Positions 3,093 to 28,800 of a DNA stretch of 45,654 nucleotides are shown here, one piece after another (the stretch's first letter is position 1; each line of letters starts with the position of its first letter). This stretch comes from Octopus bimaculoides (taxonomy: Eukaryota). Location of the stretch: assembly GCF_001194135.2 (NCBI RefSeq), contig NC_068993.1, positions 18,841,739 through 18,887,392 of the forward strand. The letters run 5' to 3'. The position numbers and the translations under genes were made by a program. Below the pieces are notes generated by a model that was given only the letters and a program-made list of their open reading frames with translations, did not search any database and was not told the origin of the DNA.

Positions 3093-3153
<61 letters not shown>

Positions 3154-3852: not shown

Positions 3853-6800
3853 GTTTGTTAATGCGTTTTTTGTGATCTCTCTTATTATTATTATTAGGTA
3901 CTACTAAAGCAGAGTGGTCCCCAAAATTATTTACTTTGTTTAAAAAAAAAATTATTTACTAATTTGCATACGCGCACTCACACACTTGTAGGATCGACTA
4001 CTCACGACTAGCTAGCGCGGACGCGCGACTGCGCGTTGGGGACCACTCTGCTTTATTTCGATAAAATAAGGACAAGTTGAACACTGGGGTCGATATTATG
4101 GACTCGTTCCTTCCCCCGAACCCTGCTGGCTTTGTGCCAAAATTTCAAATCCTCCTCCTCATTATTATTATTGAGATATTGATGTAAACCTTTCACTGTG
4201 TTATGTCCTGTCTTAGGAGCCTCCCCGTTGTTGTCTTTAAGCACCTGTGGCTAACAAACATGTTGGCAGACTCGTTAGCGTGTCCGACTGTATGCTTAGC
4301 AGCATTTCTGAGTTCAAATCCAGCCGAAGTCAACTTTGCCTTTCATCCTTTCGAGGTCGATAAAATAGAATTGATGTCATCGACTAACCACTTTCCCTCC
4401 TACAATTGCTTGCCCTGTATCAAAATTTGAAACAATTATTATTTTATAAAAGAACGGCAGTGGATTAATACAATTCCTGGGGCGTCGGGTCAAAATGCTT
4501 TGCGGTACATAGTTACTGCTCTTTACGCATTAAGTCCAAATCTTGCCTGTTACACCTCGGGACTCAATGTAAGAAAGCGTTAGTCAAATATTGGGATCAA
4601 TTTAATCGATTAATCTCTCACCTCTCGAAATTGCTAACCACCCGACTAAATTACAAATTATATATATATTAAAAAAAACTGTAGATTGTTATAATTATAT
4701 GAACCATGCTGTTTTCGTTCTGAGTTCAAACTCCACTGAAATCTGTTTTGCATTTCACCTTTCTGTGGTTTATAAAATAAAGAACAAATCAGGTGTTCGA
4801 TATAATTGTATGTTTCCCTTCCTATATAGATTTGTGACTTTTAAAAAGGATTTTAATCATTCTTTTTCTGTCTTAATGTCGAATATCCTTTTTTTCTTCT
4901 CCGGACTGCGATAGGAAAAGTACGTATTAGTAAAACACTATGGTTGTCTATTTAATTGTCTTCGGCTGCCCTCTTCCCCTATTTCTACTAAATATGCAAG
5001 AATTTCAAAGATAACGGTCCAAATCAGAGGGTTTTAAAAAAAATATTAATTGAAGGTCCGATTTAGTTTTCAGATATGCGCATGCGTAATTCATGTTCAA
5101 AATTCCGGCTACCCCCTTGTTTGACTATGACTACCCATGTACCAAAATAAATATCATGATTGCGGATAGGGTGGACAACACATGAGATTGCTTTTTTTTT
5201 TTCTATGCTAGCTTGGGTTTGTTGAAAGTATAAGGCATTTTACTGCTAGATACCCCTGCTATGGTTAACCATTTGCCTGTTACCTACGTAATGGATTAAA
5301 AAAAAAATTCCATACCTCTTTGAAAGTACAGAGCTATCGCTCAGTATTTTGACAGGGAATTGTCAACAAATTTCGTGTGTTTACATTCTGTAAAGTGCAG
5401 AATGTAAACATTCACACACACACACACGTGCGTTCACGCATGCATGCATATACATTCTTACGAATGTATATATGACAGACGTTGTACAATTTCTGTCTGC
5501 TAAATTCACTCATAAGGTATAATTTATTCAGAGCTGCAGAAAACACTTTCCCATGTGGTTGAGAAGCAAACGTCTTAACTATATTGTCATATCTGCAATA
5601 TTCAGTTACCTGAGTTTATATCCTACCTATTTCAGTGTTTTGAAAATTTTCTTTATCGATTTATGATGCTGTAGGGAAGTGGTTATACGCCATTATGTGT
5701 ACTCCGCTTCCGTACATTAAATTTCTTGAAGAAACAACGGAACGCAGATTCTGAACTATCAACACAACAATATTTATTACAATAGAATTCGGCAGTACTT
5801 CGCCCTTTGGTTACTGAGACGCTGTCAATGAAGTTGCGTGGTTATTTGTGTAGCTCCAGAGTTGGGTTGTTGGAGAGAGCTGCGACGACGTCTAGGCTCT
5901 TCGTCGGCCAGCGAGAAAGAGAATGAAAAAGGGCGCGAAAGCTTGGATGTCGATGACTACGCATACGCCTGTTCCTGTATTCCATCCGGAACTAGTCCCT
6001 GCGCATGCGTGGATAAGCTTTCCGGAAATGTCGTCTGCTATTAAGCCGTCACTACATGGCTCCCCCTCGAGTGCTGCAAGCATGAAAATAGAAATTTGGA
6101 GTGGCGCCTGAGGCAAGATGGCTACCGAAAGCACCCACAAGATGTGGCAGAAATATATATAAAGAAAAATCAAAGAAAGTGATGTACAATTGTGAGATAC
6201 ATGCATGCAATGTACAGAAGAATTGACAATGACAAAACAACCGTGATGACAACTGTCCAGGAAACTGGAATCACGCGATGTAAAAGTGATTTTTTTTGTT
6301 TTTTCCTGAAAGGAAAGAAAATATATGAGTGTACAAGTGTGTGAGAGAAAACACAGAACATAGTAAAAGTGTCTGTAGAGAAAAACCAGTTCATATTAAA
6401 GTTACACAAGGAGAATAGAATGTTCATACGCAGGAAGTTGTGGTCAAGGAGCAGAGTTGTAGTTGAGCGTCAATGCTGGGACCTGTGTTACCTGGTACGG
6501 AATATTCTGGCTGGTTAGTTCTGGTCTGTTGATCGTGAGTGGAAACATCCACTCTAACAGGGTCGAGATAAAACCGCGCTTGTTGATGTTGGTGTTGCTG
6601 GCGATGACAATGGTAGACAGTACATTGGTGGTGAAAACGTCTGCGCTGGAACTGGCTGTAGCTGTGTTCTGTATGTGTGTGGTGGTTATGTTGTTGACNN
6701 NNNNNNNNNNNNNNNNNNNNNNNNNNNNNNNNNNNNNNNNNNNNNNNNNNNNNNNNNNNNNNNNNNNNNNNNNNNNNNNNNNNNNNNNNNNNNNNNNNNN

Positions 6801-9800
6801 NNNNNNNNNNNNNNNNNNNNNNNNNNNNNNNNNNNNNNNNNNNNNNNNNNNNNNNNNNNNNNNNNNNNNNNNNNNNNNNNNNNNNNNNNNNNNNNNNNNN
6901 NNNNNNNNNNNNNNNNNNNNNNNNNNNNNNNNNNNNNNNNNNNNNNNNNNNNNNNNNNNNNNNNNNNNNNNNNNNNNNNNNNNNNNNNNNNNNNNNNNNN
7001 NNNNNNNNNNNNNNNNNNNNNNNNNNNNNNNNNNNNNNNNNNNNNNNNNNNNNNNNNNNNNNNNNNNNNNNNNNNNNNNNNNNNNNNNNNNNNNNNNNNN
7101 NNNNNNNNNNNNNNNNNNNNNNNNNNNNNNNNNNNNNNNNNNNNNNNNNNNNNNNNNNNNNNNNNNNNNNNNNNNGAAATAACCGTGAAGTTTTTTGTGT
7201 GAAAAACCACAAAGGTCTCAGCCGCAAAGAAGTCTTTGGTTATAGAATCTGGAAGTCATTGACAAAATGAAAAACTTTAACGTAGGAAAATTTACTTAGC
7301 TTTTCACTTGTGATGGATGAGAATATAGTGGCAATCCTGAAGTTGAACGTTGTGAAGCATACAAATTCAATGGCTGTTGAAACGAGGTCTGTAGATCTTT
7401 TAGCTCGGGGTACCAATTTACAAAGTACCGTGTGATGACCAAGAGAAAGTCCTGCAGCTGTGGAATAAGCTGATGCGAGTGAGTGTGTGCATTCTCTATT
7501 TGTGACGAGCATGTTGAGAGACAGGCGACGGCTCGTGTAGTATTATCGGTTGGTAGTTCAGATTTTTGGCTGCAGTTGTTCTTGATTCGGGGTCACCAAT
7601 TGTAGGGAATTGGTTGAACCGAATCACGTCGGGGTCACCAATTGTAGGAAATTGGTGACCCCCGACGTGATTCGGTTCAACCAATTTCCTACAATTGGCC
7701 TGCAGCTGTGGAATAAGCTGATGCGAGTGAATGTGTGCATTCTCTATTTGTGATGAGCATGTTGAGAGACAGGCGACGGCTCTTGTAGTATTATCGGTCG
7801 GTAGTTCAGATTTTTGGCTGCAGTTATTCTTGATTCGGGGTCACCAATTGTAGGGAATTGGTTATACTGAATCATGTCGGGGTCACCTATTGTAGGAAAT
7901 TGGTTGAACAGAATCACGTCGGGGGTCACCAATTGTAGGAAATTGGTTATACCGAATCACATCGGGGTCACCAATTGTAGGGAAATGGTTTAACTGAATC
8001 ACGTCGGGGTCACTAATTGTAGGGAAGTGGTTATACACCATTAGGTGTACTCCGCTTCCGTACATTAAATTTCTTGAAGAAACAACGGAACGCAGATTCT
8101 GAACTATCAACACAACAATATTTATTACAATAGAATTCGGCAGCACTTCGCCCTTTGGTTACTGAGACGCCGTCAATGAAGTTGCATGGTTGTTTGTGTA
8201 GCTCCAGAGTTGGAATGTTGGAGAGAGCTGCGACGATGTCTAGGCTCTTCGCCGGCCAGCGAGAAAGAGAATGAAAAAGGGTGCGAAAGCTTGGATGTCG
8301 ATGACTACGCAGGCGCATGAGACTCTTCCTGTATTCCTTCCGGAACTAGTCCCTGCGCATGCGTGGATAAGCTTTCTGGAAATGTCGTCTGCTATTCAGG
8401 CGTCACTACAATGCCTTACAAGACTATTCAATCGATGCCACTACTTAACTGGTGTTTTAATTTAATGACTCCAGGAGAATGAAGGGCAAAATTGGCATCA
8501 GTAAGATTTGAACATAGAAAATACTGTTTGGACACTCTAACGATTCTGTCTGCATATTTTCTCTTTTATTTGTTTCAGTCAATTGGGGCACTACCTAGGA
8601 GGGTTTAGACAAACAAATCGATCCCCAGTGCTTATTTGTTAAGTCTGATACTGATTCTATCGGTTGCTTTTACTGAATTGCTTAGTCGTGGGAATATAAT
8701 TAAAATAACTAGTTGTTAAGCAGTGGTGGTGGGGCAAACACATCACAATCACACACACATACATTCATAGGGAAAACCCCTAAGCCATTAGGAATCACTG
8801 CCGAGATGATTAAAATTTCTGGTGGTGTAGGATACAGCTTAGTCACCTTTATAGTTAATCCGGTTATTCAGGAAGGCACCATCCCCAGTGGCTGGTGTAG
8901 TAGTATTATAGTTTGCTGCTACAAAGGTAAAGGTGATGCCTTAAATAGAAACAACTACAGAGATATTAAACTGCTAGACCAAGTCATGAAAGCTACTGAG
9001 ATGGTTATAGCTCAGTTGATTAGGAATAGAATTCAACTAGATGAGATGCAGTTTGGTTTTGTATCTAGGAAGAGTACCACAGATGTCATCTTGCTAGTGA
9101 GACAGCCTCAGGAAAAGTACTTGGCCAGAAGTAAGCCATTGTACTTAGCCTCGTCAACCTGGAGAAAGCTTTTGACAGAGTTCCCCACTCTGTTATCTGG
9201 TGGTCTCTAAGCAAGTTATGAATCTAGGAGTGGCTTGTTAGAGTTGTACAAGCCATGTATGTGGTGCTGTCAGTGGCTGTGAATACAATGATGAATTTAA
9301 CGTACTTCTTAAGCCAAGACTTCATAGTTGGGGAGCAAATTTCTTAACCACACAGCTATGCCAGCACCTATACTAATTGATGGAGTACGTTCTTCATCAT
9401 TTAATGTCCGCTTTCCATGCTAGCATGGGTTGGATGATTTGACTGAGGACTGGTGAAACCAGATGGCTAACCAGGCTCCAATCTGATTTGGCAGAGTTTC
9501 TACAGCTGGATGCCCTTCCTAATGCCAACCATTCCGAGAGTGTAGTGGGTGCTTTTACGTGCCCCGGCATGAAGGCCAGTCAGGTGGTACTGGCAACGAC
9601 CAAGCTCAGAATGGTGTATTTTACGTGCCACCTGCACAGGAGCCAGTCCAGTGACACTACAGTATCAATAATGTAGTTTTTTTTCATAAAATAAATTCAC
9701 GAAATGAAGTTTCGCTTAGATAAAGGAAAGTAAAATGGTAATAGATGTACAGGTTGATTATATACATGTATATGTTAATGGTCAGATCACTAATTTTTTT

Positions 9801-12270
9801 CATTGCCATGTGGTTTATTATATCAACATTTTTCAATTTAGAATGAAATATAGGACAAGTTTATTGTTTTGTATGAGACTAGCAAATTCAGATTCTATGC
9901 TGTACTTGGGAAACATAAAATTGGAGAGCTTCTTGCAAGATATTGCATGAACACAACTTATGACAACTAATCATGATCCTCCCAAATATGTAACCTGAAA
10001 GTTTGTTAGAGGATTGGGGTGGTAAGGGTAGCATGGATGGTAATATATTGAGCGGTAATTAATTTTGTTGATAAATGACCGAGTTCAGTATCTGCCAGTC
10101 AGCTCTGACATTGCATTTTATCCCACTGTTGGCCTACTTTATGCAGTTCAATAGACAACAGCTCCAATGCATTATCTGTTTATGTACAAAAGAGTGCTGA
10201 AAAGTTTCTGATTTTGGGTAAAAGAAAACACAGGAGGATCAGTTAATTATGATTTTATCCAACATAATCCCCTTGCAGATTCACGTATTTATTGCAGTGG
10301 TCTTTCAGTTTTTCTAAACTCAGTAAAAGAACTTGGAAGGTTGGGCCTCCAACCAGGCCTTTTGCAAAACCCTTTAAGCCAAGAACTTTTCGGTACCCTC
10401 TCGTATAGTGGGACATATTTGAGCTTTGTACAACATCCATTACCTAACAAAGTTAAATTATTTCTAGAAACATCAGGACTATGAAAACATGGCAGACTTT
10501 ATTTTTTCTAATTAGAATAGTCATTAAGTAACAAACTAAGCTACTGTTGATACATTAACACTAAAAAATACAACAAAAAAGAATTTTAAATTTATATGCT
10601 TTAAGTTAATAACTTTGGTGAAATTGTATTTTACTTCAATAGTTTTTAAATTCTTTTATCAAAAATTAGAGCGGAATTAAGTGTAACATAATTAGATATG
10701 TTAAAAGCCTTTTAGAGAGGCTTATCAGTGTATAAACCATAGGTTATTTGCAGTAAGCTTCTTAAGATATTAGTTTCCTGCCAGATATATCAAACAATAC
10801 AATAAATAATTGTTTTTTTTTTTTCTAGTAGGCTGTTGCATTTATAATTTCAGCTAGATTATGAGCAACAGAAAAATGTATTGTCAAATTTAGATTACTT
10901 ATATAAGTTGTGTAAGGGAGTAGACAATAATTCCCTTGACAAATTTCAAATTGATTTTCTTAGATCTAAGATCTTTATATTTACCACTTTTGGAATCATG
11001 TTTCTGATAAGACACCTATGTATTTCAATTAATTTTAAAAACAAAGGATTTGGTCAGATTTAGTAAAATAACTCAATATTATAAAAGGGGGCGAGCTGGC
11101 AGAATCATTAGCATGCCAGGCAAAATGACGCTAGGCATTTTGCCTTTCTTTACGTTCTGAGTTCAAATTCCACTGAGGTTCATCCTTTCAGGGTTGATAA
11201 AATTAGTACCAGTAGAGGATTGGGGTCAATGTAATTGACTTATCCCCTCCCCCAAAATTGCTGGCTTTGTGCCAAAATTTGAAATCAATATTAAGTTACT
11301 GTAAGGTGGTGAGCTAGTAGAATGCTGGGCAAAATGTTTTGCTGTATTTCGTTTGTTTCTTTGTTCTGAGTTCAAATTTTGCTGAGATTGACTTTGCCTT
11401 TCATCCTTTTAGAAGCAATAAAATAAGTACCAGTTGAGCACTGGGGTCAGATTAATTGACTTATCCCCTGCCCTGAAATTGCTGGCCTTGTGCCAAAATT
11501 TGAAATCAATATTAAGTTGCTGTTTTACTTAAAATTATAATGAAATATAAATATTTTTTTTTTTTTTAAATCTAAATGAGAGGTTGTATAACAACCAGAA
11601 GCAGTCACTGGCTGAATAACATCAACAGTGCTAAATATGTTTTATATATATATATATATACTTCCTTTAGAATTTCTGTTGCTTGGCTCTGGCAGCAACA
11701 AAATGCCTGCCTTAGATATGGACTTTGTCAGTTCACTGCATTGAAAAAATATGTAATTTTTGAAGAATATTTAATATAAGACTCTGTATAGATCAGTTTA
11801 TTTTGTTGGATTATTTTAATATTTCCTTTTTTAGGGACTTATTAAAGGCAGCATTACTCTATCTCCAGCATTTAATTGTTTTTCAGGTGAGGGATTTTTC
11901 ATGCTTTGAAAGCACTGAATGACTCCTCATAATGTTAACAGAGAATGTAAACATCATATCGTCGTTTCACTCTGGCGAACACATACACATACGTGCATAT
12001 GTATATTACATGTGTCTGTACAATGTAGGGTTAGGTGCAGGTATGGCTGTGTGGTAAGAAGCTTGTTTCTCAACATGTATCTTCTACTATAGCCTTGGGC
12101 CAACCAAAGCCTTGTGAGTGGATTTGGTAGATGGAAACTGAACGAAGCTCATCGTATATAGCTGTGTGTGTTTTGTGTCTGTGTTTGTCCTACCATCACC
12201 ACCATCATCCTGCCAACACACTGCTGTTGGTGTGTTTTCGTTCCCATAACTTAGCAGTTTGTTATTTATT

Positions 12271-13723: not shown

Positions 13724-16700
13724 CTGGTAGTTCCTGTTTGGCCAAGTAACAAGGGAAATGATCAATAACTACAAGTAACATGATAGCAATGTTATCTGTC
13801 TGATAGACTTGTATTCTAATGCAAACAACATTGTTTGGTTGTTAAGAGAAATCATAAGATAATAGTTTTATTTTCCCTCCACTTTCCTCAGTAATTGAAA
13901 TATTTCATGACTCTACATTTCAGACGGAGAGTATACAATGGTGAAACTCGATATGTTTAGTTTATCTAGATACTTCACTGTATAATTAATGGAAAAGATA
14001 ATCTAAGAAGTAACAGAACATTTGTGTATGTTTGTGTATATGTATGCACACATACATATACATACATACACAGCCGTTTGGTAGAGTTGTTAGAGTGTCA
14101 GATACGATGCCTTATGGTACTTCTTTGATACTGTGCTCTGAGTTCAAGTCTTGCTAGGGTCCATTTTGCTTTTCACCCTTTAACTCTTTAAGCATTTAGA
14201 TTACTTTGTCAAATATAATGCTTATTTAATGACGTTGTTTTCAATTAATCTTACATAATATCTCATAGCTTTGAGACTTCAATGGCATGATTGTTTATTT
14301 TCAGAATGACATTGTTAGGTAGTTGTGAAAGGCCAGATCTGGCTGGTTTGGACATATAACAAGAATATTTGGGTCAGATATGGCTAGTTTAATGATAAAA
14401 GGTTAGACGTTGATTAAAACAACTACCGATCTCAGATGGAGGATTAGTGGAATGGCAGAAACATTGGACTGAAAGGCGGCGAGCTGCCAGAAACGTTAGC
14501 ACGCCGGGCGAAATGCTTAGCAGTATTTCATCTGCCGTTACGTTCTGAGTTCAAATTCTGCCAAGGTTGACTTTGCCTTTCATCCTTTCGGGGTCGATAA
14601 ATTAAGTACCAGTTACGCACTGGGGTCGATGTAATCAACTTAATCCCCTTGTTTGTCTCCTATGTTTGGCCCCTTGTGGGCAATAAAGAAATAAGAAATA
14701 TTGGACTGAATGTCTTCCATATTTTGTATTGGCTTTGTGTGTGTGTGTGTGCATGTGTCTGGCTATTTGTATGTATATGTGTGTGCATATATTTGTATGT
14801 ATGATTGTGAATATGATAAACAATTTGATTTCCGTTGGGATTTACCAGTGAAGACTTTACCTTCATATAGTGTATCTTAGTTATTTTGCAACTGCTACTT
14901 ACACATAGCTTTACATTGATTTTCAAAAGGTGAGGTGTTCTGGGTATTTTTACATACACACTATTACCTTTTTTTTTCCTGATAATTATGAATCGAACGA
15001 AGAAAACTTATGCAATTCATGTTTGTATGAAAAAAAAAAAAAAATCATTCATGGGACATAACTCTGCCTTAAGTTAATTCCTCTTGCCTGCCGTCTGCAT
15101 ATGTTAGTGACCTAAATTGTCTGTTTTATTAATATAATTTGAAACGCCTAATGTACATTCAAATTCTACTTTACTGGGATGAGTAGTTATGTCTTATTTA
15201 TTTCTATAGTAAATATTTGGACTGCCAGGTACATTAAGAACCTGATGGTTGCTTAAATTAGTGCTACTCGAAGTGGTGGTCCATGGACTGGTGCCGGTCC
15301 GTGAGCCGGCACCAGCTGCTGGTACATGGCGAGTTTCCAAGAATGAAAAAAAACATAAAATGCACATGTAATATTGTATTATTTGTTTACAAAATGAATA
15401 TAAGATAAAAAGAAAATTGTCAACTTTTATTGTATTCATTATATATATTGTTTCCGGTACAAATTGATATTACTAAAAAATATTACCGGTCCCTGGCACA
15501 TTTGAAAAAAAAAAAAAAAAAAAGATGACTGCCGCTATGCCACATCAGTTAGTTTGAGAAGCACTGGTTAAAATAACAGAAAGGTATTGAGAGCACTTTT
15601 AAAATATAAATTTAGCTCTCAAACCAAACTTTATTCTAATATTTTCTCAATGATTCCACTAACTCAAAGATAATCAAATGAAATACTCATGAATATTTAT
15701 CTTCCAAAATATGGTTAATTCTCTAAAAGGTATAATCCTTTTAATAATAGTTCATCTCAGATGTTTAAAGTTTGGAATAATAATTTGCTTTAAATTATTT
15801 ATATCTAGGTTAATAAAATAATTTATTTTTTGGATGAGTTTTTTTTCATTGTTAAGTTTTGATTCATTTTATTTAAAAAGAAAGTTTATATTTTTAAAAT
15901 TCTGTATGTAGTCAGTCAGGTCATTGAGGTATGGCTATCCTGGCACACAATCTTCAAAATCAATTATATGAATCTCAATTTTCATTTCTATCGAACTGCT
16001 AAGTTACAAGACAAAGATATAAGTGCACACAGCTTATACTAAACATACACACACACACACTTATGTACAGAGTTTCTACTTACTAAATTCCGCTCACTAC
16101 ACTTTGGGTAACCTAAGACTACAGTTGAAAAGATTAGCCCAAAGTACCTTGCTGATGGATTGAACCTGGTACCTGACCTCCTCAACCAAACTACTGAGGC
16201 TGCATGTAGTACAGTGATGCTAATTTTCTTTTTTTAGTTCAATGTGTTGAAATTTTAATTTCTTTAATAATTCTGTTATTGAAGTATCACATGTACACAT
16301 ACAACTATTTATTGTGTATTTTTGCATAGGAATTTCATTAAAAAGTTTTTCATGTATCACCTAAAAACCTGTAGGTGTGTTACAGGTGTGCCATCATTGG
16401 TCTGGAATGGCATTAGTTTGTCTTAATTTTAGTTTTTGTTAATCTTAGTAATTATGCTGCCATTGTTTCTTACAATATTTTATCTTCATTGCACTCATCA
16501 CATTTATAATTATTTATCATGTAATTAAAGAATGGATTTTGTAAGTTTTTATATTTTATTATTTCTTCCTTAACAGTTGGCATCAAAGGGTTTGAACATT
16601 GTTTTAATAAGTAGAAGTCCAGAAAAACTAGCTGCTGTTGCCAAAGAAATTGGTAAATATATCTTTTTAAATGTTATTTAAAATGTATTTTGTAAGTAAT

Positions 16701-19700
16701 ATACAAACTTAATGTTGTTCTTATCTGAACTAAGTAAAAGCTAATATCTTCTGTTCCTTCTGTTTTCAATCTTGGTTGTCATTATTATTAACTATGTCAG
16801 CAGTATTTGTTGTAGCTTTTGCATATTGACTGAGGAAGATAAAATAGTAACTAGTAAACTTATGTGGTTAAGCCTACCAAGAAATTCTTTCCCAGTGCAT
16901 ACTCTTTACTCTTTTACTTGTTTCAGTCATTTGACTGTGGCCATGCTGGAACACCGCCTTTAGTCGAGCAAATTAACTCCATGACTTATTCTTTGTAAGC
17001 CTAGTACTTATTCTGTCGTTCTCTTTTGTCGAACCGCTAAGTTACGGGGACGTAAACACACCAGCACTGGTTGTCAAGCGATGTTGGGGACACACACACA
17101 CACACATATATATATACGATGGGCTTCTTTCAGTTTCCGTCTACCAAATCCACTCACAAGGCTTTGGTTGGCCCGAGACTATAGTAGAAGACACTTGCCC
17201 AAGGTGCCATGCAGTGGGACTGAACCCGGAACCATATGGTTGGTAAGCAAGTGACTTACCACACACCCACTCCTATGCCATGATTAACAATTTGATCTCT
17301 TAATTATCTGCTTTAAATTCATCCTAAGACTTCCCTTTATCTCTTTGCTATTCCTCATTGGTGACTTGTGTGAGGCAAAGTGCTTACTGAGATAATTTAA
17401 CTACCAACAATTGTTTTCTACAAATATTAGTTTCAAATTTTGGCGCAAGGCCAGCAAGTTAAAGGGAGGAGGCTAGTCGATTATATCAATCCCAGTGCTC
17501 AACCAGTACTTATTTGATCGACTTTGAAAAGATAAAATGCTAAGTTCACCTTGGTGGAATTTGAACTCAGAACAAAAGACAGATGAAAAGCTGCTAAGTA
17601 TTTTGCCCAGTGTGCTAATGATTCTGCCAGCTCACCATCTTAATTTTCTACAAATATTATCAGAAACCTATTGGTTGTGAAGAAGTTTCAAAGTTTCTCA
17701 GTAAGCCATTATATAAAGCCAACATTTTGGATCAAGTGTCCTAATGTATTTTTCTTGTCAACGCCCAATTGCTGTTTGCTGGTTACATTATCTTCAGTTC
17801 AAACTGGACTACAGCTTTTGTGTTGTTGTCCAAGGCAAAGTTGTTTAGCTCCAAGATAGCCACTGATTGAACAGACATTTGATTGAAAACTATCCAGTAG
17901 TGACCATCCTGTCATTTCTCCAGGCATGTTGCACCCATGGGTACATTATGCAATGTATCTATTCCTAAGATGGTAGTAATATTTGAAGTAATATGGCTGC
18001 TGTTTCTAGCAGAATGGGCAACCACGTGGAAGCACTATCATTGGCTTATGCACGCACCATGGTTGTTTTTGTTTAGCTCCAGATCAGCTCTGATCAAGGA
18101 GATTTATGATTAAAGGTATTCGAGCTGCCTCCTTCCTGTCTTTTTAAGGGTGTGTAGGACCTTATAGTCTGGTATGTATTCTCTTTATTTCAGACATCAG
18201 GGTGGTATTTGAGGGAGATTTGGCTGCAATTTCTAGTTAGTTGAGTTTAATAAAAGTCTCCTCATATCTCTCAGAAACAGTACTTGTTAAATTATCATTG
18301 ATATATTATTGTCTTGTCCAAATGCAACAACTTTTGCTGTATGCTGGCCTTATCAATTCGTCGTCATCGTCGTCGTCGTCGTCCTCCTCCTCTTCCTCCA
18401 ACGTTCATTTTCCATCCTGGCATGAGTTGGATTGTTTGACCAGAGCTGACAAGCTGGAGAGCTGCACCAGTTTCCAGTCTGATCTGGCTTGGTTTCTATG
18501 GTCAGATGCCCTTCCTAACACCAACCACTTCACAATGTGTGCTGGGTGCTTTTAACGTGAAGCCAGCACGAGCACTTCTACATGGCACTGGCACAAGTGC
18601 TTTTTAAGTGACACCAGCGCAGGGCTCTTACAGGCCAATCCTCTTCATCAGGGGAAGTGGCCTTAACGCTTCTGTAATTTGTGTAAAATTTTCCTATCAG
18701 TGGTTATGAAGTATTAGTCTTACTATCTGTTTTGGTACATGTCGTACTGGTCATTCTTGTGTTCCAATATGTTTTGTGACATCTACCACCATGTCTCAAA
18801 AATAAATTCTTTAAATGTTGCCAGTCATATGAATTACCATGCTGTTGTGTAACTTCTGGCCGAGCATGATTGAACAACCTATGAGTAAATGTGATCTAGC
18901 CATAACCATCTCATCAATTTAAGGATATCTAAGCGCTTCATTATCTTTTGTATCTTTTTCCTATTTATGACATGATTTCTGATAGATCTGGCTGCTACTT
19001 CTAGTTATTCAAGTGACCACTTAGAAACCCCTTGCATTGACTGGAGATTGCTATCATACGGTATTAAACTAATTTTTCTGTATTTCTTCTATTTCTATAT
19101 TTCATTGTATTTTTATTTTTTACATTACAGAGACTACTTATAAAGTTGAAACCAAAACAATTACTATGGATTTTTCTGATAGAAGATTAAATTATGGTGA
19201 AATAAAATCAGTATTAAAGGATATGAAAATCTCTACATTAGGTAATATTGTCACTTTTTTTCTTTCATTACTCTCACTAGAACATCCTACTATTAAAGTG
19301 GTAGGATGTTTGTTTGAGACTTGAGTTCAGGCCAAATAATTAGGATTCCTTAGTAATCATGAGGATTTTTACAAATCAGTGGCCTTTCTAGTGTTGATGG
19401 TATGATAAAAGGCACCCAGCTCATATGGCAAACTGTTTAGTGATAGGAAGAGCATCTAAGTGCAGGAATGGCTGTATGGTGAGAAGTTTGCCTCCCAGCC
19501 ACATGGTTCTGGGTTCAGTCCCACTCATGCTAATGACCAAGACCTTTGGCATTATGTTGTGCTTGAGAAGAAGACCCATCAAGCCGAGCAAAATCAGTCG
19601 TGGCAGATAATGGTGTCATGCAAATGGCACCCGTGCTGGTGGCATGTAAGAGCACCCATTACACTCTCGGAATAGTTGGCGTTAGGAAGGGCATCCAGGC

Positions 19701-22700
19701 CTAGAAAACCATGCCAAATCATACTGGAGCCTGGTGCAGCCTTCCAGTGTGCAAGCCCAGTCAAACCATCCAACTCATGCCAGCATAGACAAAGGATGTT
19801 AAATGATGATGATGATAATGAAATATATAAATAACAAGCTCTGTGTAAATAAATAATTTTATTTTATGTATGTATAATTTTTGTACATGTTCATTTTTCT
19901 TTCCTTACTCTTTTACTTGTTTCAATCATTTGACTGCGGCCATGCTGGGGCACCGCCTTTAGTCAAGCAAATCAACCCCAGGACTTATTCTTTGTAAGCC
20001 TAGTACTTATTCTATTGGTCTCTTTTTGCCAAACCGCTAAGTTACGGGGATGTAAACACACCAGCATCGATTGTCAAGCGAAGTTGGGGGGGACAAACAC
20101 AGACAGACAAACATATACACACACATACATACATTTACATATACATATATACGACAGGCTTCTTTCAGTTTCCGTCTACCAAATCCACTCACAAGGCTTT
20201 GGTCGGCCCGAGGCTGTAGTAGAAGACACTTGCCCAAGATGCCCTGCAGTGGGACTGAACCCGGGACCTTATTGTAAAGAAATTTTAAGATTAATAAAAG
20301 AACAGTTAAACTACATTTACTGGTAGAAGTTTCAGTACAAAAAACAGAGTAAAAATTTATTATAAAATTAGTTTTGATTGTGATTTCAAGTCTTACCTAA
20401 TTAACCTGATTGAATAAGCTGTTGAGCAAACATTTCAAGTTAAAGATTATTTTTTAATTAATTTTCTGTGGAAGCTTTTATACCTTTTCCAGTGAATTTT
20501 TTACATTATTTTCTTAGTTCTACATTAGGTTGTTTGGTTGTACAAAGCTGCATATTTTACATTAATTGCTAGAACATGTAGTGTGCTGCTGAATGATAAT
20601 GGTATGGCATCAGTGTATTTTAGGTTTAGTTAGGATGAAGTTGGAATGAATTAGTTTGTCTTTGACTTTGAATCTGTGATCTTTGGGTCAGTAATACAAC
20701 ACCATAACTACACTTTAGCATTTCTCAAAATTCCATTAAGATGCTTTCTTTTATGATTAATTTTTTTGAAATTCAATCCTCAGCCTCCTGACATGTTTGT
20801 GACGATCTCTAATTGAATTTATTTTATTTGTTTTCCTCCCATAGTGAACAATGTGGGTGTTTCTTACCAATACCCTGAATATCTTCTAGACATTCCAGAC
20901 AGAGAAAAGGTTATCATTTTTATTATTATTATCATTATTATTATTTGTATTATTCACGTTTTTATTGTTAGTGAGAGCAGTAAACTTCTGTTGGGTTAGA
21001 GATTCAGTTTTGTTTTCATTCCTATTTCTAATCATTTCATTTCCCTGCAGTCATTCATCTTTGTTTGGTAAAGGCCAAACTGTTTAAATACCCATTTTTC
21101 ACTGAAGGTGAATAAAAGCCTTCTTGCCCATGTTAAGAAATATTCTGGCAGAATCATTAATGCTGCAGTCAAATTGCATAGCGGCATCTGTTCCAGCTTT
21201 TTAGGCTTCAAGTTCAAATACTGTTCAGGTCAACTTTGCTTTACTTTTTGGGCTTGATTAAATAAAATACTTGTCCAGTACTGGAGTTGATGTAATTGAA
21301 CTTGTCCTTTGAGTGCGGGAGCTTGCTCCAAAATTTGAAACCATTATTATGAAGGTGGTGAGCTGGCAGAAGTGTTAGCATACTGGGCAAAATGCTGAGT
21401 GATATTTTGTCTGTCTTTACGTTCTGAGTTCAAATTCCGCAAAGGTTGACTTTGCCTTTCATCCTTTCGAGGTCAATAAAAATAAGTACCTGTTGGACTC
21501 TGGGATCGATGTAATTGACTTGTCTCCTCCTCCAAATTTCAGGCCTTGTGCCTATACTAGAAAGGATTATTATTGTTATTAAGGTGGTGAGCTGGCAGAA
21601 TCGTTAGCATGCAGAATGAAATGCTTAGCGGTATTTCGCCTGTTACTGCATTCTGAGTTGAAATTCCTCCAAGGTCGACTTTGCTTTCATCCTTTTGGGG
21701 TCGATAAAATAAGTACCAGTTGTGTATTGGTTCATGTAATCGAGTTACCCCCTCCCCCAAATTTCGTAGAAAGGATTATTATTGTTGTTATCATGAAAAG
21801 CTGTGGTTTTAGCAGACTCCTTAGAGCATTGGAAAAAAGGGCTTTTAAGTACATTTTGCAGGCTCTTTGTTTTGATTTCAAATCCTTTGCCTTTTGTCCC
21901 TGTGGTGGGGGTCAGTCAAATAAAGTACCAGCCAATTATTGGGGTTGATGGTATCGAACCCAACCTTCCCTCAAAATTACTGGCCATCTGTCTATATCAG
22001 AATCCATAATTATTATGTTTATTATTATGTTTATTATTATTATACACTGATATATTGACAGTAACGACAAAGATAAGAAAACCAGTCTTGGATATTTGTC
22101 TATAAGTATGTATGTGTGTATTAATTATATTTTTTAACATATTTTCTTTTTTTTTTTTCCAGGCTCTTCTTGATTTGATTTGGATCAATGTGATCTCTAT
22201 GACAATGGTGAGTCCTTACTGTAATATCTATTATACAAAATAGACCTGTGTGTATGTGTATTCACTTTTCACGCAAAAAACGGCCATGCAAATTAGTTCC
22301 ATTCTTGGGATGCATGAATAATTTGACCTCAGATACATAATAGGGTCTTCATTTTAGATTTTTATTAAGAATAAATAATATTGCTTTATAGATATGGTTC
22401 ACTTCTTTAAAACGGTTGCTTAATGTCAACTTCCGATATTGACATAGCTACTACCTAAGCAATATTACTGTATTTTAATGTGTATAAGGAACTCCGTAAT
22501 TTTTTGGGCTTAAAATTTGGGAAAAACGTTCTACCTGTTTTATGTTCAAACCGGACAGATCCAGCCTCTCACAACTACCCTACAATGTCATAAGAATAAA
22601 CAATGGCATCATTGAAATCTCACAGATACAAGGTAACGCATGATTATTTCAAAGCAATATCAATGAGTAAGCTTTATATTTGGAAGAGTAATCTAAATGC

Positions 22701-25700
22701 TAAAGAGTTAAACATCTTATCTCATTATTTTCAGATGACAAGTATTGTCTTGCCTAATATGGTTGAAAAAGGCGGTGGTGTGATCATCAATGTAGGATCT
22801 GCCTCTGGAGATATGATCTGCCCCTTTTTAACAGCTTATTCTGCTTGCAAGGTTGGTAAGCTTTTTATATTTAACCCTTTTGATACCAACCTGGCTGAAA
22901 CTGGCCCTGGCTCTGATTACAAATGTCTTGTTTTCATAATTTTTGAATTAAAATCTTCCACTGAACCTTAGTCACAATTTATGTTCTTAACCCTAGATGA
23001 ATGATAACTACATAATTTTACTAAATTCTTTGTTATATTTAAAGTAATTGAAAGATATACTGAGCATGTCAAAATAAATACAGTAATGAAAGGGTTAAAT
23101 AAACACACAACTTCAGAACTGTGTTTGCTGTTTGTAGACGTTTCATTAACTGTTTCATTTCTTTGTTCTTTAAAGCAATAATGTTCATTGAAGACATTTC
23201 AAACGTTCCTTTTCATTGCTTTTTGATCCTCTGATGCTTCTAATTACCCTGATCATGCAGATCTCTGATCAAAGGTGGTTCAGCCATAACTGTATCTTTT
23301 AATTTTTATTGTTTTTTTTAAGGAGTTTCTAGGACTACACCCTGTGAATCCTTTTAAAACCAGGATATGTGATCTGATAGAAATTCAGTTGCAAATTCTA
23401 TCAGTTTGCGTAGCTGTATTAAAGTTCTTCTGTTGGCTGTTTTATTATATACGCAGAAACCTAGAGCATGCTGTCCAATTTACTCCAACCTTAGATGGAG
23501 CTGAAACCCACAGTCGCCATTTTTGTTCAAAAATAATTGCTGCTTTTATCCTAGTGATTAGATATTGTTTTTCTAGTTTCCTTATTTATTTTGATTGGTG
23601 TATACTCAAGGAGTGGGCTGCAACCATGGCTTTCATGGATTGGTGTGATTGGTGCCTTCAACATTTCACTTGCATAATATCAAATTGATGCAGGAAAAAG
23701 ATACGTGGAGTTATGAAATTCCAGAAGGCCAAAGTTCTAAATGGGTAGCCTGATTGTAAGAGTCAGTTTAGAGCCAGACATCATCAAACACACTGTATAT
23801 AATGAGAGGAGAAGTGTGAATCAGGAGTTGCTGACCAACCAACTCTGAGGAGCATAGGCCATTATGGTAGTGGTAGAAAAGGCAGACAGAGCTGAGAATA
23901 TGTCTGTGGGCTACAGTTTGCAGTAGGTTGGTGAGCAACTTCATGCTTTTATTTTGATATGCTGTAGAATATGAGTGTGAATATAGCCACAGTGCTATTA
24001 GGTTTCAGCTGAGCTAATAACTGTTAAGTGCTGTAAGAATTTTTATTATTGAAGAGTAATGCCAATCTGTGAGACACAGTATTTGCTTTGGTGAGGCTGT
24101 GTGCATGCCCGTAAGGTAATTGCACAGTTAAGTAAGCTTCAGTATCCATATGTGCTGGCTTAAGTTATCGTATTCCATATTTGGCACTCTACTTGCAGAC
24201 TTAAACTACTATGGTTTTCTTCTGTTATATTATTTTAATGTGTAGATGTCTAACTGAGACCCCCTTTGGTCATGACTGACCCTGGGATTGCGCCTAGAAA
24301 GTTACCTTCCCAGGCACAAGTCTGAGCAAGGTTGTTTATGGAAGACTAGCAGTTGCCCCTGCATACCGGCTTCCCCTCTCCACGCTGCCAGTGTTATCCA
24401 AGGGAAAGGCAAAGGGGCCGATACAGCTTGGCACCTGTGATGTCGCAACTCATTTCTACAGCTGAGTGAACTGGNNNNNNNNNNCTGTGATGTCGCAACT
24501 CATTTCTACAGCTGAGTGAACTGGAGCAACGTGAAATAAAGTGTCTTGCTCAAGAACACAACATGCAGCCCGATCCGGGATTGGAACTCACAACCTCACG
24601 ATCGTAAGTTCGATGCTCTAACCACTGAGCCATGTGCCTTCACTAGATGTTTAACTGAAGAAGTAGGTTCTAATGTATTCAAATTCTCTGTTAGGTGAAC
24701 ACTGATCTTAGAGGCTTCTTTTTTTTTTTTTGTTATTCTGAAACTCCCATTCTGTGTTGCTTATTTTTATTCTTGTTTTTTGTTTTAAGGCTTATGTGAA
24801 ATATTTCTCTGAAGGTCTCAATTCAGAATATAGTGATAAAGGTGTTATCACTCAGGTAACAATCCAAGTTTTTTCTTCTCTAATGTTTATTCTTAGCAAC
24901 TCACCTTTGTACCTTAATAGTTTCAATGGGAAGTCTAGAATTGTGGGTGACATCGATGTTTGTGTAAAAGGTTCTGCTAATATGTATTTAGTTTAAGGCA
25001 GTAAGCTGGCAGAATCATTAGCATGCCAGGCAAAAATGCTTAGAGGCATTTTATCCTTCCTTACATTCTGAGTTCAAATTTCGGTAGGGTCATCTTTGTC
25101 TTTCATTCTTTCAGGGTTGATAAAATAAGTACCAGTTGAGCACTGGGATCGATGTAATCGACTTACCCCAACCCCTAAAATTGCTGGCTTTGTGCCAAAA
25201 TTTGAAACCTCTATTAAATACTTACACTTCGTTTCTCCCCCACCACCCCGCACACATTTCCATTCCCATATTTTCAGTAACTGAACTTTTAACTGTTAGT
25301 AATCTTATTGTTCTAATCTTCCTTGAATCATCAGATTAGCCTAAATAGAAATGTATCGAAGTATTCTAACTATTTAAAACTAATTAAAAGTAATCAATAG
25401 TTAACCTTTAAGTCTTAAGCATTTAAACCAGCCTTTAATATTGGTTCCAAATTTTGGCACAAGGCTAGCGATTTGGGGGGAGGAGGTAAGTGATTAGCAG
25501 CCACAGCTGTCGTAGATGTAAGGGACATAACTGCTTTTATAGCTAATGAGCTTATATTTTCCCATCTATAACTTTTTTGTTACAATAATTCTGTTGAAAT
25601 ACACTGTGTTTTATTAGTTAATTTTGAAAACAATGAAGAACTTTTAACCTAGAATTTTGATAGGTTTTTATTTAGCTGACATTAAACAGGAAATTTGTAT

Positions 25701-25856: not shown

Positions 25857-28800
25857 NNNNNNNNNNNNNNNNNNNNNNNNNNNNNNNNNNNNNNNNNNNN
25901 NNNNNNNNNNNNNNNNNNNNNNNNNNNNNNNNNNNNNNNNNNNNNNNNNNNNNNNNNNNNNNNNNNNNNNNNNNNNNNNNNNNNNNNNNNNNNNNNNNNN
26001 NNNNNNNNNNNNNNNNNNNNNNNNNNNNNNNNNNNNNNNNNNNNNNNNNNNNNNNNNNNNNNNNNNNNNNNNNNNNNNNNNNNNNNNNNNNNNNNNNNNN
26101 NNNNNNNNNNNNNNNNNNNNNNNNNNNNNNNNNNNNNNNNNNNNNNNNNNNNNNNNNNNNNNNNNNNNNNNNNNNNNNNNNNNNNNNNNNNNNNNNNNNN
26201 NNNNNNNNNNNNNNNNNNNNNNNNNNNNNNNNNNNNNNNNNNNNNNNNNNNNNNNNNNNNNNNNNNNNNNNNNNNNNNNNNNNNNNNNNNNNNNNNNNNN
26301 NNNNNNNNNNNNNNNNNNNNNNNNNNNNNNNNNNNNNNNNNNNNNNNNNNNNNNNNNNNNNNNNNNNNNNNNNNNNNNNNNNNNNNNNNNNNNNNNNNNN
26401 NNNNNNNNNNNNNNNNNNNNNNNNNNNNNNNNNNNNNNNNNNNNNNNNNNNNNNNNNNNNNNNNNNNNNNNNNNNNNNNNNNNNNNNNNNNNNNNNNNNN
26501 NNNNNNNNNNNNNNNNNNNNNNNNNNNNNNNNNNNNNNNNNNNNNNNNNNNNNNNNNNNNNNNNNNNNNNNNNNNNNNNNNNNNNNNNNNNNNNNNNTGA
26601 ATTTAAAAATATTTTTAGATACAGAAATAAATTTATTTCTCAAATGCGTGATAATGCTATAAATAGCGAGATCAGGATAAATTATCCATTTATTGCAGAA
26701 AAATATGTTACTGGCCAGCCATGAGACTTGAACTCACATCTCTGTGATTACGCGTCAAGTGTTTTACCATTAAACTAAACTGCCCAAAAACGAATTCTTC
26801 TGCAATTTTAGAACTTATAAATTTAGCTTCATAAGACGCTAACGTTAAATTCAACTTTAATGCTTCTAAAAAAGAACAAACTTTGTTTGTTTACTTTCAT
26901 TGTAAAGTTGAATTTAAAAATATTTTTATTCAAAAGTTTTGTGTCCTCCTGGTCTTTTAATATTTTAAAAATAATTAATAATTTCCTCAAATGTTATGAT
27001 TGTAACAAGAATTTTTTACATTTTAAATTATGCTTGAATTTAACAATGCATTATCATTTAAATACAACCTTCCTTATTGAGCACCTGGTAATATTAATTT
27101 CCTATTGTTTATAAGATTGAATGTTTCTTAATGTTGCAGTGTGTGATGCCATTCTATGTAACTACCAAATTGAGCAAATTCCGCAAATCCAGCTTGATGG
27201 TTCCTAACCCTAAGACCTATGTGAAAAGTGCTCTGAATTCATTAGGAATGTCATCCAGCACATACGGTTACTTTGCTCATAATTTATTTGTGAGTATAAA
27301 TGTCTAATTTTCCTTTCTTTTTTTTTTTTTTTTTTTAAAGTAGGAAACTGTATATAGAACAATTCTGCAGTTATTTAGTTTTGCCATTAACCCATTACCT
27401 CCCATAATTCTATTAACTGGAATTTTTTTTTATGAAACTTTGATTTCTAGCATAAAACAGCCTTAGAAACATGCTGGAATGATCAAAATAACATTTCAAA
27501 ATAACTTTTTAAATAGAAATAAGCGAGATATTGGGTGAAAAATTAGCAAACCTCATTTGAATATCAGAGACATATACCTAATAGATATAGCAAAAAGGTT
27601 TGATGTGTAAATATTGACAGATAATTACGAAATTTGTAATTTTTAAGTGATCTCATATGAGATCACTGGTAGGTATTGGTTTAAAGGCATAAATCATTGA
27701 ACCAATTTTTTTGATTCCTGTTTGAAGAGCTCTTTTTTTTCTCTTTTCTTTTATATTTTACTTGTCTCCGTCATTGGACTGCACCATGCTGAGTTAATGC
27801 CTTGAAGGGTTGGATTAAACAAATTGACCCCAGTGCTTATTCTTTAAGTCTGCCATTTATTCAATCAGTCTTTTATGCTGAACCACTAAGTTATGGGGAG
27901 GAACAAACACAAAAACACTCACACACACACATGTGTGCACACGCATTCATATGATGGGGTTCCACAGAATTATTGTCTGCCAAATTCACTCACAAGTTAT
28001 AGGTTGGTTCTAGATTGTAGTAGATGACACTTACCTAAGGTGCTGTGTAGTAGAACTGAACCTGAGACTGCATGATTGCAAAGCAAGCTACTTGACCATT
28101 CAGCCATGCCTGTCCTTTTTGTATAAAAGTTATAGAAAAATATGTTTCAACAATTCGTGACTTTTTGTGATTTTAGCTGTGAGTCAAGACTTAGCTGTGA
28201 GTCCAGCTGGTTTGTCTTAGGTTAGACATGCAATGTTTTGTTTGTTCTTATTTTACTTAGTTGTAAACATTCATAAGTCTAATCACAGAGGTTTTGACAG
28301 GAAGACTTAGTATTTATTTGTAGAGTATGTGTTTGTTCCTCCGCCACTGCTTGACAACCAGTGTTGGTGTGTTAATGTCCCTGTAACTTAGCAGTTCAAC
28401 AAAAGACACCAATAGAACAAATACCAGGTTTAAATAACAAGAATGAATAAGTACTGGGGTCAGTTTGTTCTTCTAAAGATTCAAGGTGGTGCCCCTGCAT
28501 GGCCACAGTCTAATGACTGAAACATGTAAAAGATAAAACATTACAATTATAAAAGGGTTTCGACTTGTATTGTGTTGCATGTTTCCCATATAAGAAGTAT
28601 AATATATTCTGTATAGGTGCGAGTGTGGCTGTGTGGTAAGAAGCTTACTTCCCAGTCACATGGTTCTGGGTTCAGTTTCACTGCCTTGCGCCTTGGGCAA
28701 ATGTCTTCTATCATAGCCTCAAGCTGACTAAAGCCTTGAGTGGATTTGGTAGATGGAAACTGAAAGAAGCTCATTGTTTCGAAACGCCTAGTTTTAGAAT

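Follow-up and report, generated by a model that had tools for sequence, protein, structure and literature searches.

The 45,654-nucleotide stretch of Octopus bimaculoides DNA analyzed here (contig NC_068993.1, positions 18,841,739 to 18,887,392; hereafter the window) carries a long terminal repeat (LTR) retroelement whose 5′ LTR is followed by a tandem array of primer binding sites (PBSs). On the − strand, four units of 42–43 nt are followed by a partial fifth PBS. Each unit consists of AT, 20–21 nt complementary to the 3′ end of tRNA-Trp, and a tail of ∼20 nt that resembles the end of U5. With moderate confidence, we regard this array as the scar of a reverse-transcription error that was later multiplied, such that the junction between U5 and the PBS became a 42-nt minisatellite. 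We infer every historical step in this account from features of the sequence and from a comparative pattern that includes retroelements recovered from termite gut metagenomes.

Organization of the PBS array

An earlier note on this DNA had described tandem modules of a U5 end, 2 nt, and a tRNA-Trp PBS behind the 5′ LTR, and these modules are indeed present (Table 1). The note also recorded one full, one partial, and one inverted PBS in a block at 7587–7698, all of which can be read there. Its account of the TGG triplet needs a correction: the PBS adjacent to the LTR does carry the change from TGG to TAG, but the internal copies do not all keep TGG, with unit 4 reading AGG.

Every PBS copy of the main array bears at least one defect. 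The copies also differ in length. The PBS at the leader has 12 nt, whereas all upstream copies have a 20- to 21-nt complement of tRNA-Trp. By analogy with termite relatives that have a single PBS, we infer that the 12-nt PBS at 7835–7848 is the original short PBS of the element. All units have the junction GATTC(G)/GTATAACC in common, at which the tRNA-derived stretch is joined to the last 19–20 nt of U5.

Tandem Repeats Finder (TRF) reports a repeat at 7835–8036 with a period of 42, 4.8 copies, 85% matches, and a score of 297. An array with this period is a minisatellite in the sense of head-to-tail units of 10–100 nt. When up to three mismatches are allowed, the 18-mer TGGTGACCCCGACGTGAT occurs four times, always in the array region, although a count that allows only mismatches misses copies carrying an indel. 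There are no occurrences elsewhere in the 45.6-kb window, and the expected count is 0.00 (100 shuffles).

Two other interpretations of the units were set aside. A tRNA origin of the U5-like tail, suggested by the CAACC/TTC that it has in common with the tRNA complement, was rejected for the window, where 17 of the 20 tail positions agree with the real U5 end. The PBS might seem better conserved than the tail, as selection would predict, but with shared mutations counted only once, the difference was unconvincing.

The 248-nt duplication and the inverted unit

A second repeat detected by TRF lies at 7451–7904 and has a period of 248, 1.8 copies, and 95% identity. The duplicated block at 7587–7698 holds an inverted unit, one flawless PBS, and one 12-nt partial PBS. 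The flawless copy (7640–7621) is the only 20-nt PBS of the element without a defect, and the second 12-nt partial PBS (7598–7587) runs into leader copy B. An extra C, giving CCCCC, is common to the inverted unit and unit 3.

In the predicted RNA fold of the − strand from 7560 to 8060, the inverted unit pairs with unit 3 over ∼48 bp and encloses leader copy A (−174 kcal/mol, z = −12.4). On this model, any transcript that spans both units would be expected to bear a hairpin of ∼48 bp. The inversion point sits on the palindrome ACCAATT-TCCTAC-AATTGGT, which spans the end of U5 and the start of the PBS, and an inversion at this position fits a strand switch at a hairpin.

Identity of the primer

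The PBS motif is the exact complement of a 3′ tRNA fragment (tRF-3) of mouse tRNA-Trp-CCA and of the 3′ end of human tRNA-Trp. The mouse 3′ tRF is ATCACGTCGGGGTCACCA (PMC7555719), and the human tRNA-Trp template has been printed as TGGTGACCCCGACGTGATTTGAACACGCAACCTTCTGATC... (10.1101/400127). The PBS copies in the window are complementary to the final 18 nt of tRNA-Trp, CCA included, and continue with TC(G).

The sequence GATTC, corresponding to tRNA positions 59–57, is present in six of six full PBS copies; human, mouse, and the termite loci have GATTT. Its presence in all full copies predicts that tRNA-Trp of the source organism has G57 and the T-loop TTCGAAT. The complement of this host tRNA is predicted to read ...GTGATTCG. 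A tRNA-Trp gene was looked for within the window, and none was found there.

Similar modules in termite gut metagenomes

JGI metagenome contigs were scanned for two 12-nt PBS cores located 25–40 nt apart. The scan returned nine loci, seven of which are of animal type and have the same module. These seven collapse to five distinct places, all from termite gut metagenomes (L001, L002, L004, L005, and L008). Loci L003 and L009 were rejected as chance matches in high-GC bacterial DNA. A control scan that covered 596 Gb of prokaryotic genomes produced 13 matches, none with the 18-nt PBS; these are high-GC sequences or unrelated repeats and serve as a control for chance. Separately, in a contig binned as a Crocinitomix metagenome-assembled genome (L020, 1–400), a 49-nt tandem repeat contains TGGTGACCCCGA by chance and is unrelated to the PBS arrays.

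Two of the termite loci were assembled independently from different samples (L001 is the same locus as L007, and L002 the same as L006), so that assembly noise does not explain the arrays at these two loci. L002 and the related locus L010 come from IMG 3300009784, a gut-compartment metagenome of Embiratermes neotenicus that is rich in host DNA (PMC7800795). A complete Ty3/gypsy element is found at L001, with its pair of LTRs and the pol domains that mark this group (protease, reverse transcriptase [RT], RNase H, and integrase), whereas the assembled sequence of the window element is without pol. The nearest named relatives of the L001 RT are arthropod ‘17.6-like’ Pol proteins. Because the same modules are found in this complete element, the architecture is not confined to non-autonomous elements.

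The close relatives that have a single PBS (L010, L014, and L028/L029) read U5...CCCACATATA-T-TGGTGACCCCGACG-AGCGACA..., in which 14 nt of tRNA complement are followed by the leader and a DUF7041 gag. The RT of L010 is 79% identical. To see whether L008 could be an integrated LTR extended by units, LTR pairs and ends were sought in L010, L014, and L028; this yielded only the point at which the 3′ LTR of L028 starts.

In the multi-PBS elements, the extra modules are placed between U5 and the position of the short PBS. The tRNA-derived PBS of the upstream copies is 24 nt (L002, L004, and L008), 32 nt (L001), or 36 nt (L005) in length and is followed by a copy of the last 11–20 nt of U5. The extended PBS matches the human tRNA-Trp complement TGGTGACCCCGACGTGATTTGAACACGCAACCTTC, with up to two mismatches in some copies, and the match takes in the CCA that is added post-transcriptionally. 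Where the internal region is kept (L001 and L005), the last PBS has 14 nt and the leader is the same as in the single-PBS relatives.

The window and termite arrays are alike in layout, with a long PBS upstream and a short PBS at the leader (L001 and L005 among the termite loci). Both consist of tandem U5 ends, each followed by a spacer (1–3 nt in termites) and a tRNA-Trp PBS, and both include inverted copies. In L004 (1784–1933), a 53-nt stretch directly upstream of the modules matches the reverse complement of an L008-type LTR U5 end (51 of 53 identical). This snap-back-like inversion, at the boundary between U5 and the PBS, has its counterpart in the inverted unit of the window. The termite loci differ from the window element in coming from another phylum, in having no similarity to it outside the PBS, in their longer extension of 24–36 nt, in having two or three units, and in that one of them is autonomous. 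A further rearranged form is L002 (3139–3210, − strand), where a ‘mini-LTR’ of ∼60 nt is followed by three PBS modules, with unrelated DNA on both sides. In the mini-LTR, the beginning of an LTR, TGATGTGGGAGCACCCACAT..., which in L028 comes after the G11 polypurine tract, is joined to a U5 end.

The extra tRNA sequence includes CCA and is absent from the single-PBS relatives, which indicates that its only route of entry was reverse transcription of the mature tRNA that served as primer. The length of the upstream termite PBSs, 24–36 nt versus 14 nt in the single-PBS relatives, points to primer read-through and hence to a by-product. From this difference, we favor a by-product over the earlier idea that an element dependent on a helper had amplified a cis-acting module.

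Proposed origin of the array

During reverse transcription, synthesis of plus-strand strong-stop DNA proceeds through U3-R-U5 into the 3′ end of the tRNA, which is still attached to minus-strand DNA. This synthesis normally halts after 18 nt of tRNA, at 1-methyladenosine 58 (m1A58), and the copied PBS guides the second jump. In the scheme that we propose, the ancestor would have had one short PBS, TGGTGACCCCGA, of 12 nt, located two bases past the CA end of U5. Plus-strand strong-stop DNA would then have over-copied the tRNA to nt 20–21, past both the A58 stop and the 12-nt match. Such an over-extended 3′ end could not pair at the normal acceptor, so a normal second jump would not occur. It may have re-annealed ∼20 nt upstream of the U5 end on the minus-strand DNA, after which the U5 tail, AT, and the PBS would have been copied again, followed by normal extension into the leader.

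The product would be U5-AT-PBS (long, tRNA-derived)-U5 tail-AT-PBS (short)-leader, and copying of the extra module by the minus strand would fix it in both strands. The resulting 42-nt direct repeat could have been multiplied by homologous template switching of RT or by replication slippage. A later rearrangement centered on the palindrome ACCAATT-TCCTAC-AATTGGT might then have generated the 248-nt duplication and one inverted unit.

A single re-annealing step would account for the order of the parts, the long upstream and short leader PBSs, the CA end in each module, and the lineage-specific lengths of read-through. The window junctions join sequences that are not adjacent, with a tRNA stretch attached to U5, as is expected from an aberrant plus-strand transfer. 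The occurrence of one junction in all window units would imply one founding event followed by multiplication.

The divergence of the units bears on when this happened. Compared pairwise, the four full units diverge by a mean of 14.5%, versus 4.65% between the LTRs, and individual pairs of units give P = 0.003–0.05 under the LTR rate. This approximately threefold difference suggests that the 42-nt array predates the insertion and passed through at least one reverse transcription, having already been in the RNA that founded this copy. The two 248-nt copies differ by 5%, which is about the LTR–LTR value, and this second comparison suggests that the 248-nt rearrangement arose around or after integration.

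Several observations weigh against an origin by read-through. In the window, the tRNA-derived sequence goes only 2–3 nt past the canonical 18 nt, and the case for read-through there draws mainly on the contrast between 12 and 20 nt and on the analogy with termites. A deletion could instead have shortened a PBS of 20 nt to the 12-nt form. Microhomology at the tRNA/U5 junction does not exceed 1–2 nt in the window; at the termite junctions, the tRNA-derived ...CAACC and the U5 sequence ...ACC(C/T)CCA have ACC in common. The array is known from a single copy of the window's family, and the divergence argument depends on 42-nt units with hypermutable CpGs.

Alternative explanations

A minisatellite that formed after insertion strikes us as rather unlikely. 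In this scenario, the element inserted with one PBS of at least 20 nt, slippage or unequal crossing-over duplicated 42 nt, and a small deletion made the 12-nt junction. Tandem repeats with a period of ∼42 nt are common, the window is rich in micro- and minisatellites, and non-autonomous LTR elements with internal tandem repeats have been documented (PMC3286476). The phase of the units is also arbitrary, and any duplication of the segment would look alike. However, the threefold excess of unit divergence over LTR divergence (14.5% versus 4.65%) is at odds with duplication after insertion. An extra deletion is also needed before the 248-nt duplication, since both partial PBS copies have it, and the upstream termite units with tRNA sequence that is missing in single-PBS relatives are not explained.

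It is quite improbable, in our judgment, that the array is a functional cassette whose units are kept for alternative priming, for stronger primer capture, or as a sponge or target array for the 3′ tRF of tRNA-Trp. Each unit does repeat the geometry of CA end, 2-nt spacer, and PBS that would serve priming and provide a usable cDNA end, and extended tRNA complementarity is functional in Ty1. The array also seems to have outlived at least one retrotransposition. The architecture is seen in two phyla, but an enzymatic error that happens repeatedly would lead one to expect this just as much, and the close termite relatives work with a single PBS, which is the standard form of the clade. All units of the main array are mutated, and the 3′ LTR is without a unit. 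Moreover, extra PBS copies would offer more targets for 3′ tRFs, not fewer.

Locus L008 (1–190) has a feature that internal priming predicts. Its LTR U5 end is followed by two modules, the second tail stops exactly at ...CCCACA against unrelated DNA, and there is no leader or gag beyond the second module. Priming from an internal unit could have produced this structure, but a deletion would look the same, and the contig begins inside the LTR. In an active progenitor, any unit might bind tRNA-Trp and prime the minus strand, and the U5-like CA end before each PBS would still give the cDNA a usable integrase site, such that the LTR boundary would slide by whole units and a PBS that is damaged or targeted by 3′ tRFs would be backed up by others, with L008 as one such product. 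We consider this progenitor hardly probable.

Mis-assembly of the array from short reads, or at least of the 248-nt duplication, is very improbable: the scaffold is gapped, a 477-N gap lies inside the element 275 nt away, and repeats and palindromes are typical sites of such errors, but each unit has private substitutions or indels that let short reads order the units, the 248-nt copies differ by 5%, and the same architecture was assembled twice independently in the termite data.

We return to the array as a by-product of reverse transcription. Reasonably probable, in our assessment, is that the array is a scar that has been carried along passively, with no demonstrable activity in this dead copy.

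Anatomy of the retroelement

The element extends from 8410 to 5670 on the − strand and is a bona fide integrated LTR retroelement (order LTR, class I), with terminal repeats of the TG...CA type, a target-site duplication, a tRNA-complementary PBS, and a polypurine tract (PPT). The earlier note had likewise called it an LTR retroelement, and the LTR pair, GCAT duplication, and PPT on which this designation depends are all seen. The LTRs (8410–8018 and 6056–5670) are 95% identical; their alignment contains 18 mismatches in 387 positions (4.65%), many of them CpG transitions, and one 6-nt indel. Both have TGTAG...CTACA ends, and the 5′ LTR begins with TGTAGTGACG at 8410 and ends with ...CCACTTCCCTACA at 8018.

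Table 1. Features of the LTR retroelement in order along its − strand
Feature	Position	Strand	Remarks
Target-site duplication GCAT, 5′ copy	8411–8414	−	Read directly; same as 5669–5666
5′ LTR, 393 nt	8018–8410	−	AATAAA at 8126–8121; aligned with 3′ LTR
Unit 1	7976–8017	−	AT + TAGTGACCCCGACGTGATTC + AGTTAAACCATTTCCCTACA; PBS 8015–7996, TGG>TAG; 20-nt tail
Unit 2	7934–7975	−	AT + PBS 7973–7954 with one CpG>TpG change + U5-like tail
Unit 3, 43 nt	7891–7933	−	AT + PBS 7931–7911 with extra C in C-run + U5-like tail
Unit 4	7849–7890	−	AT + PBS 7888–7869 with TGG>AGG and one CpG>CpA + U5-like tail
Partial unit	7835–7848	−	AT + 12-nt PBS TGGTGACCCCGA, fused to unique leader ATCAAGAA...
Leader copy A, 136 nt	7699–7834	−	In 248-nt repeat; 95% identical to copy B
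Inverted unit	7650–7698	+	PBS with CCCCC + U5-like tail + ATTGG; orientation opposite to array
Direct unit	7587–7656	−	Tail fragment, AT, PBS 7640–7621, tail 7620–7601, AT, PBS 7598–7587
Leader copy B, 136 nt	7451–7586	−	
Unique internal sequence	7176–7450	−	Without coding signal
Assembly gap, 477 N	6699–7175		Inside element; N count is an estimated size only
Unique internal sequence	6069–6698	−	No Pfam match
PPT-like GAGGGGGAG	6060–6068	−	3 nt upstream of 3′ LTR; read directly
3′ LTR, 387 nt	5670–6056	−	CCCTACA end abuts target duplication, without PBS unit
Target-site duplication GCAT, 3′ copy	5666–5669	−	Read directly

The interior (8017–6057) contains no open reading frame (ORF) of note and no Pfam match in its visible 1,484 nt. 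Gag and pol are absent from the assembled element sequence, with the 477-N gap as a reservation. In combining LTRs, a PBS, and a PPT with a lack of coding sequence, the assembled sequence is LARD/TRIM-like, subject to the gap at 6699–7175, whose size is an estimate. The element had previously been called non-autonomous. The visible interior agrees with this in having no coding sequence, but the label rests on the assembled size of the 477-N gap. The window element is an old, CpG-decayed, inactive, and rearranged copy and not a new class of element.

Protein-database searches for other copies of the family, with an 87-amino acid (aa) ORF that runs from U5 through the array, and with a 2,499-aa six-frame concatenation of 7176–8414 (6057–6698 not being in the query), gave no match. 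Neither the two-PBS pattern nor the U5/PBS junction specific to this family turned up in scans of viral contigs.

Comparison with known systems

Avian sarcoma/leukosis virus (ASLV) has one tRNA-Trp PBS, a U5 inverted-repeat stem, a 6-bp target duplication, and gag-pol-env. The window element resembles ASLV in having the same 18-nt PBS and a short stem between the U5 end and the PBS start (ACCAATT/AATTGGT). Unlike ASLV, it has a 4-bp duplication, no genes, and several PBS copies. The 4-bp duplication and the lack of genes indicate that it is not an alpharetrovirus.

In defective HIV-1 proviruses, 7–54 nt of tRNA-Lys3 are found after the PBS at deletion junctions, and these inserts have been attributed to read-through of m1A58 and to a deferred, misplaced second-strand transfer (PMC12657518). 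There, as proposed for the window, primer tRNA sequence past the PBS is fixed in integrated DNA, and its presence is ascribed to strong-stop DNA that passed m1A58 and landed elsewhere on the minus strand. The outcomes differ, however. In HIV-1 the landing site is downstream, resulting in a deletion and a dead provirus, whereas in the window it would have been upstream, in U5, resulting in duplication of the junction in a structurally complete element, followed by multiplication. The tRNA excess past nt 18 is 2–3 nt in the window and 6–18 nt at the termite loci. An older report of tRNA sequence between the LTRs of circular murine leukemia virus (MLV) DNA is cited in PMC12220202.

Non-autonomous LTR elements with internal tandem repeats have been described in Culex quinquefasciatus, including cqgypsy_1, which has a tRNA dimer and a 26-nt duplication of the LTR end at its PBS (PMC3286476). 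Like the window element, the Culex elements are coding-free and have LTRs, a PBS, a PPT, and target-site duplications; their interiors are largely tandem repeats, and one has both tRNA sequence and a duplicated LTR end. In contrast, their repeats are not reported as a PBS/U5 junction, and cqgypsy_1 has whole tRNAs, which were read as a SINE-like insertion.

The ingredients of the window array have precedents: tRNA read-through is known from retroviruses, and internal tandem repeats are known from non-autonomous LTR elements. No description of tandem modules of a U5 end, a PBS, and a tRNA extension was found in the open-access literature, most subscription journals and the repeat databases lying outside the scope of this search. 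The earlier impression that the architecture is undescribed is in keeping with these limited searches.

Taken by itself, the window element is an unremarkable dead retroelement; what merits following up is the recurrent scar, which occurs both in a termite and in the window organism. If the proposed origin is correct, then such arrays are integrated records of primer read-through and a backward second jump, an error known chiefly from HIV proviruses, in the form of dead-end deletions. Here it would leave the element structurally intact and apparently compatible with further transposition, judging from the divergence of the units and from the termite Ty3/gypsy element. It would also offer LTR elements a simple route to extra or longer primer sites. 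Its signature, a short PBS at the leader with a long tRNA-derived PBS upstream, would be searchable in annotation, and the modules would present stacked targets for PBS-directed silencing by 3′ tRFs.

Other features of the window

Runs of N are present at 6699–7175 and near 3136, 25857, 30693, 37804, 41195, and 44126, mostly beside microsatellites; these many gaps indicate that the window is a short-read scaffold. Just outside the 5′ LTR, a 165-aa ORF at 8713–9210 (+ strand) contains an RT-like FGFVSRKSTTD stretch and has no significant match in Pfam. It looks like a LINE fragment. An ORF at 22603–22971 (+ strand) contains a short-chain dehydrogenase (SDR) segment (Pfam adh_short, E = 1.2e-9) and probably represents an exon of an SDR gene of the host.

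A tRNA-like sequence at 26713–26784 (− strand) has a score of 34.3 bits against the Rfam tRNA model but no ARAGORN call, and adjoins an assembly gap; it may be a tRNA pseudogene or the head of a SINE. Finally, a diverged interspersed repeat that contains TTCTGAGTTCAAAT... is found in both orientations, with copies 61–87% identical, at 4058–4446, 4700–4779, 11137–11523, 14497–14647, and 17423–17576. It looks like a SINE-like family.

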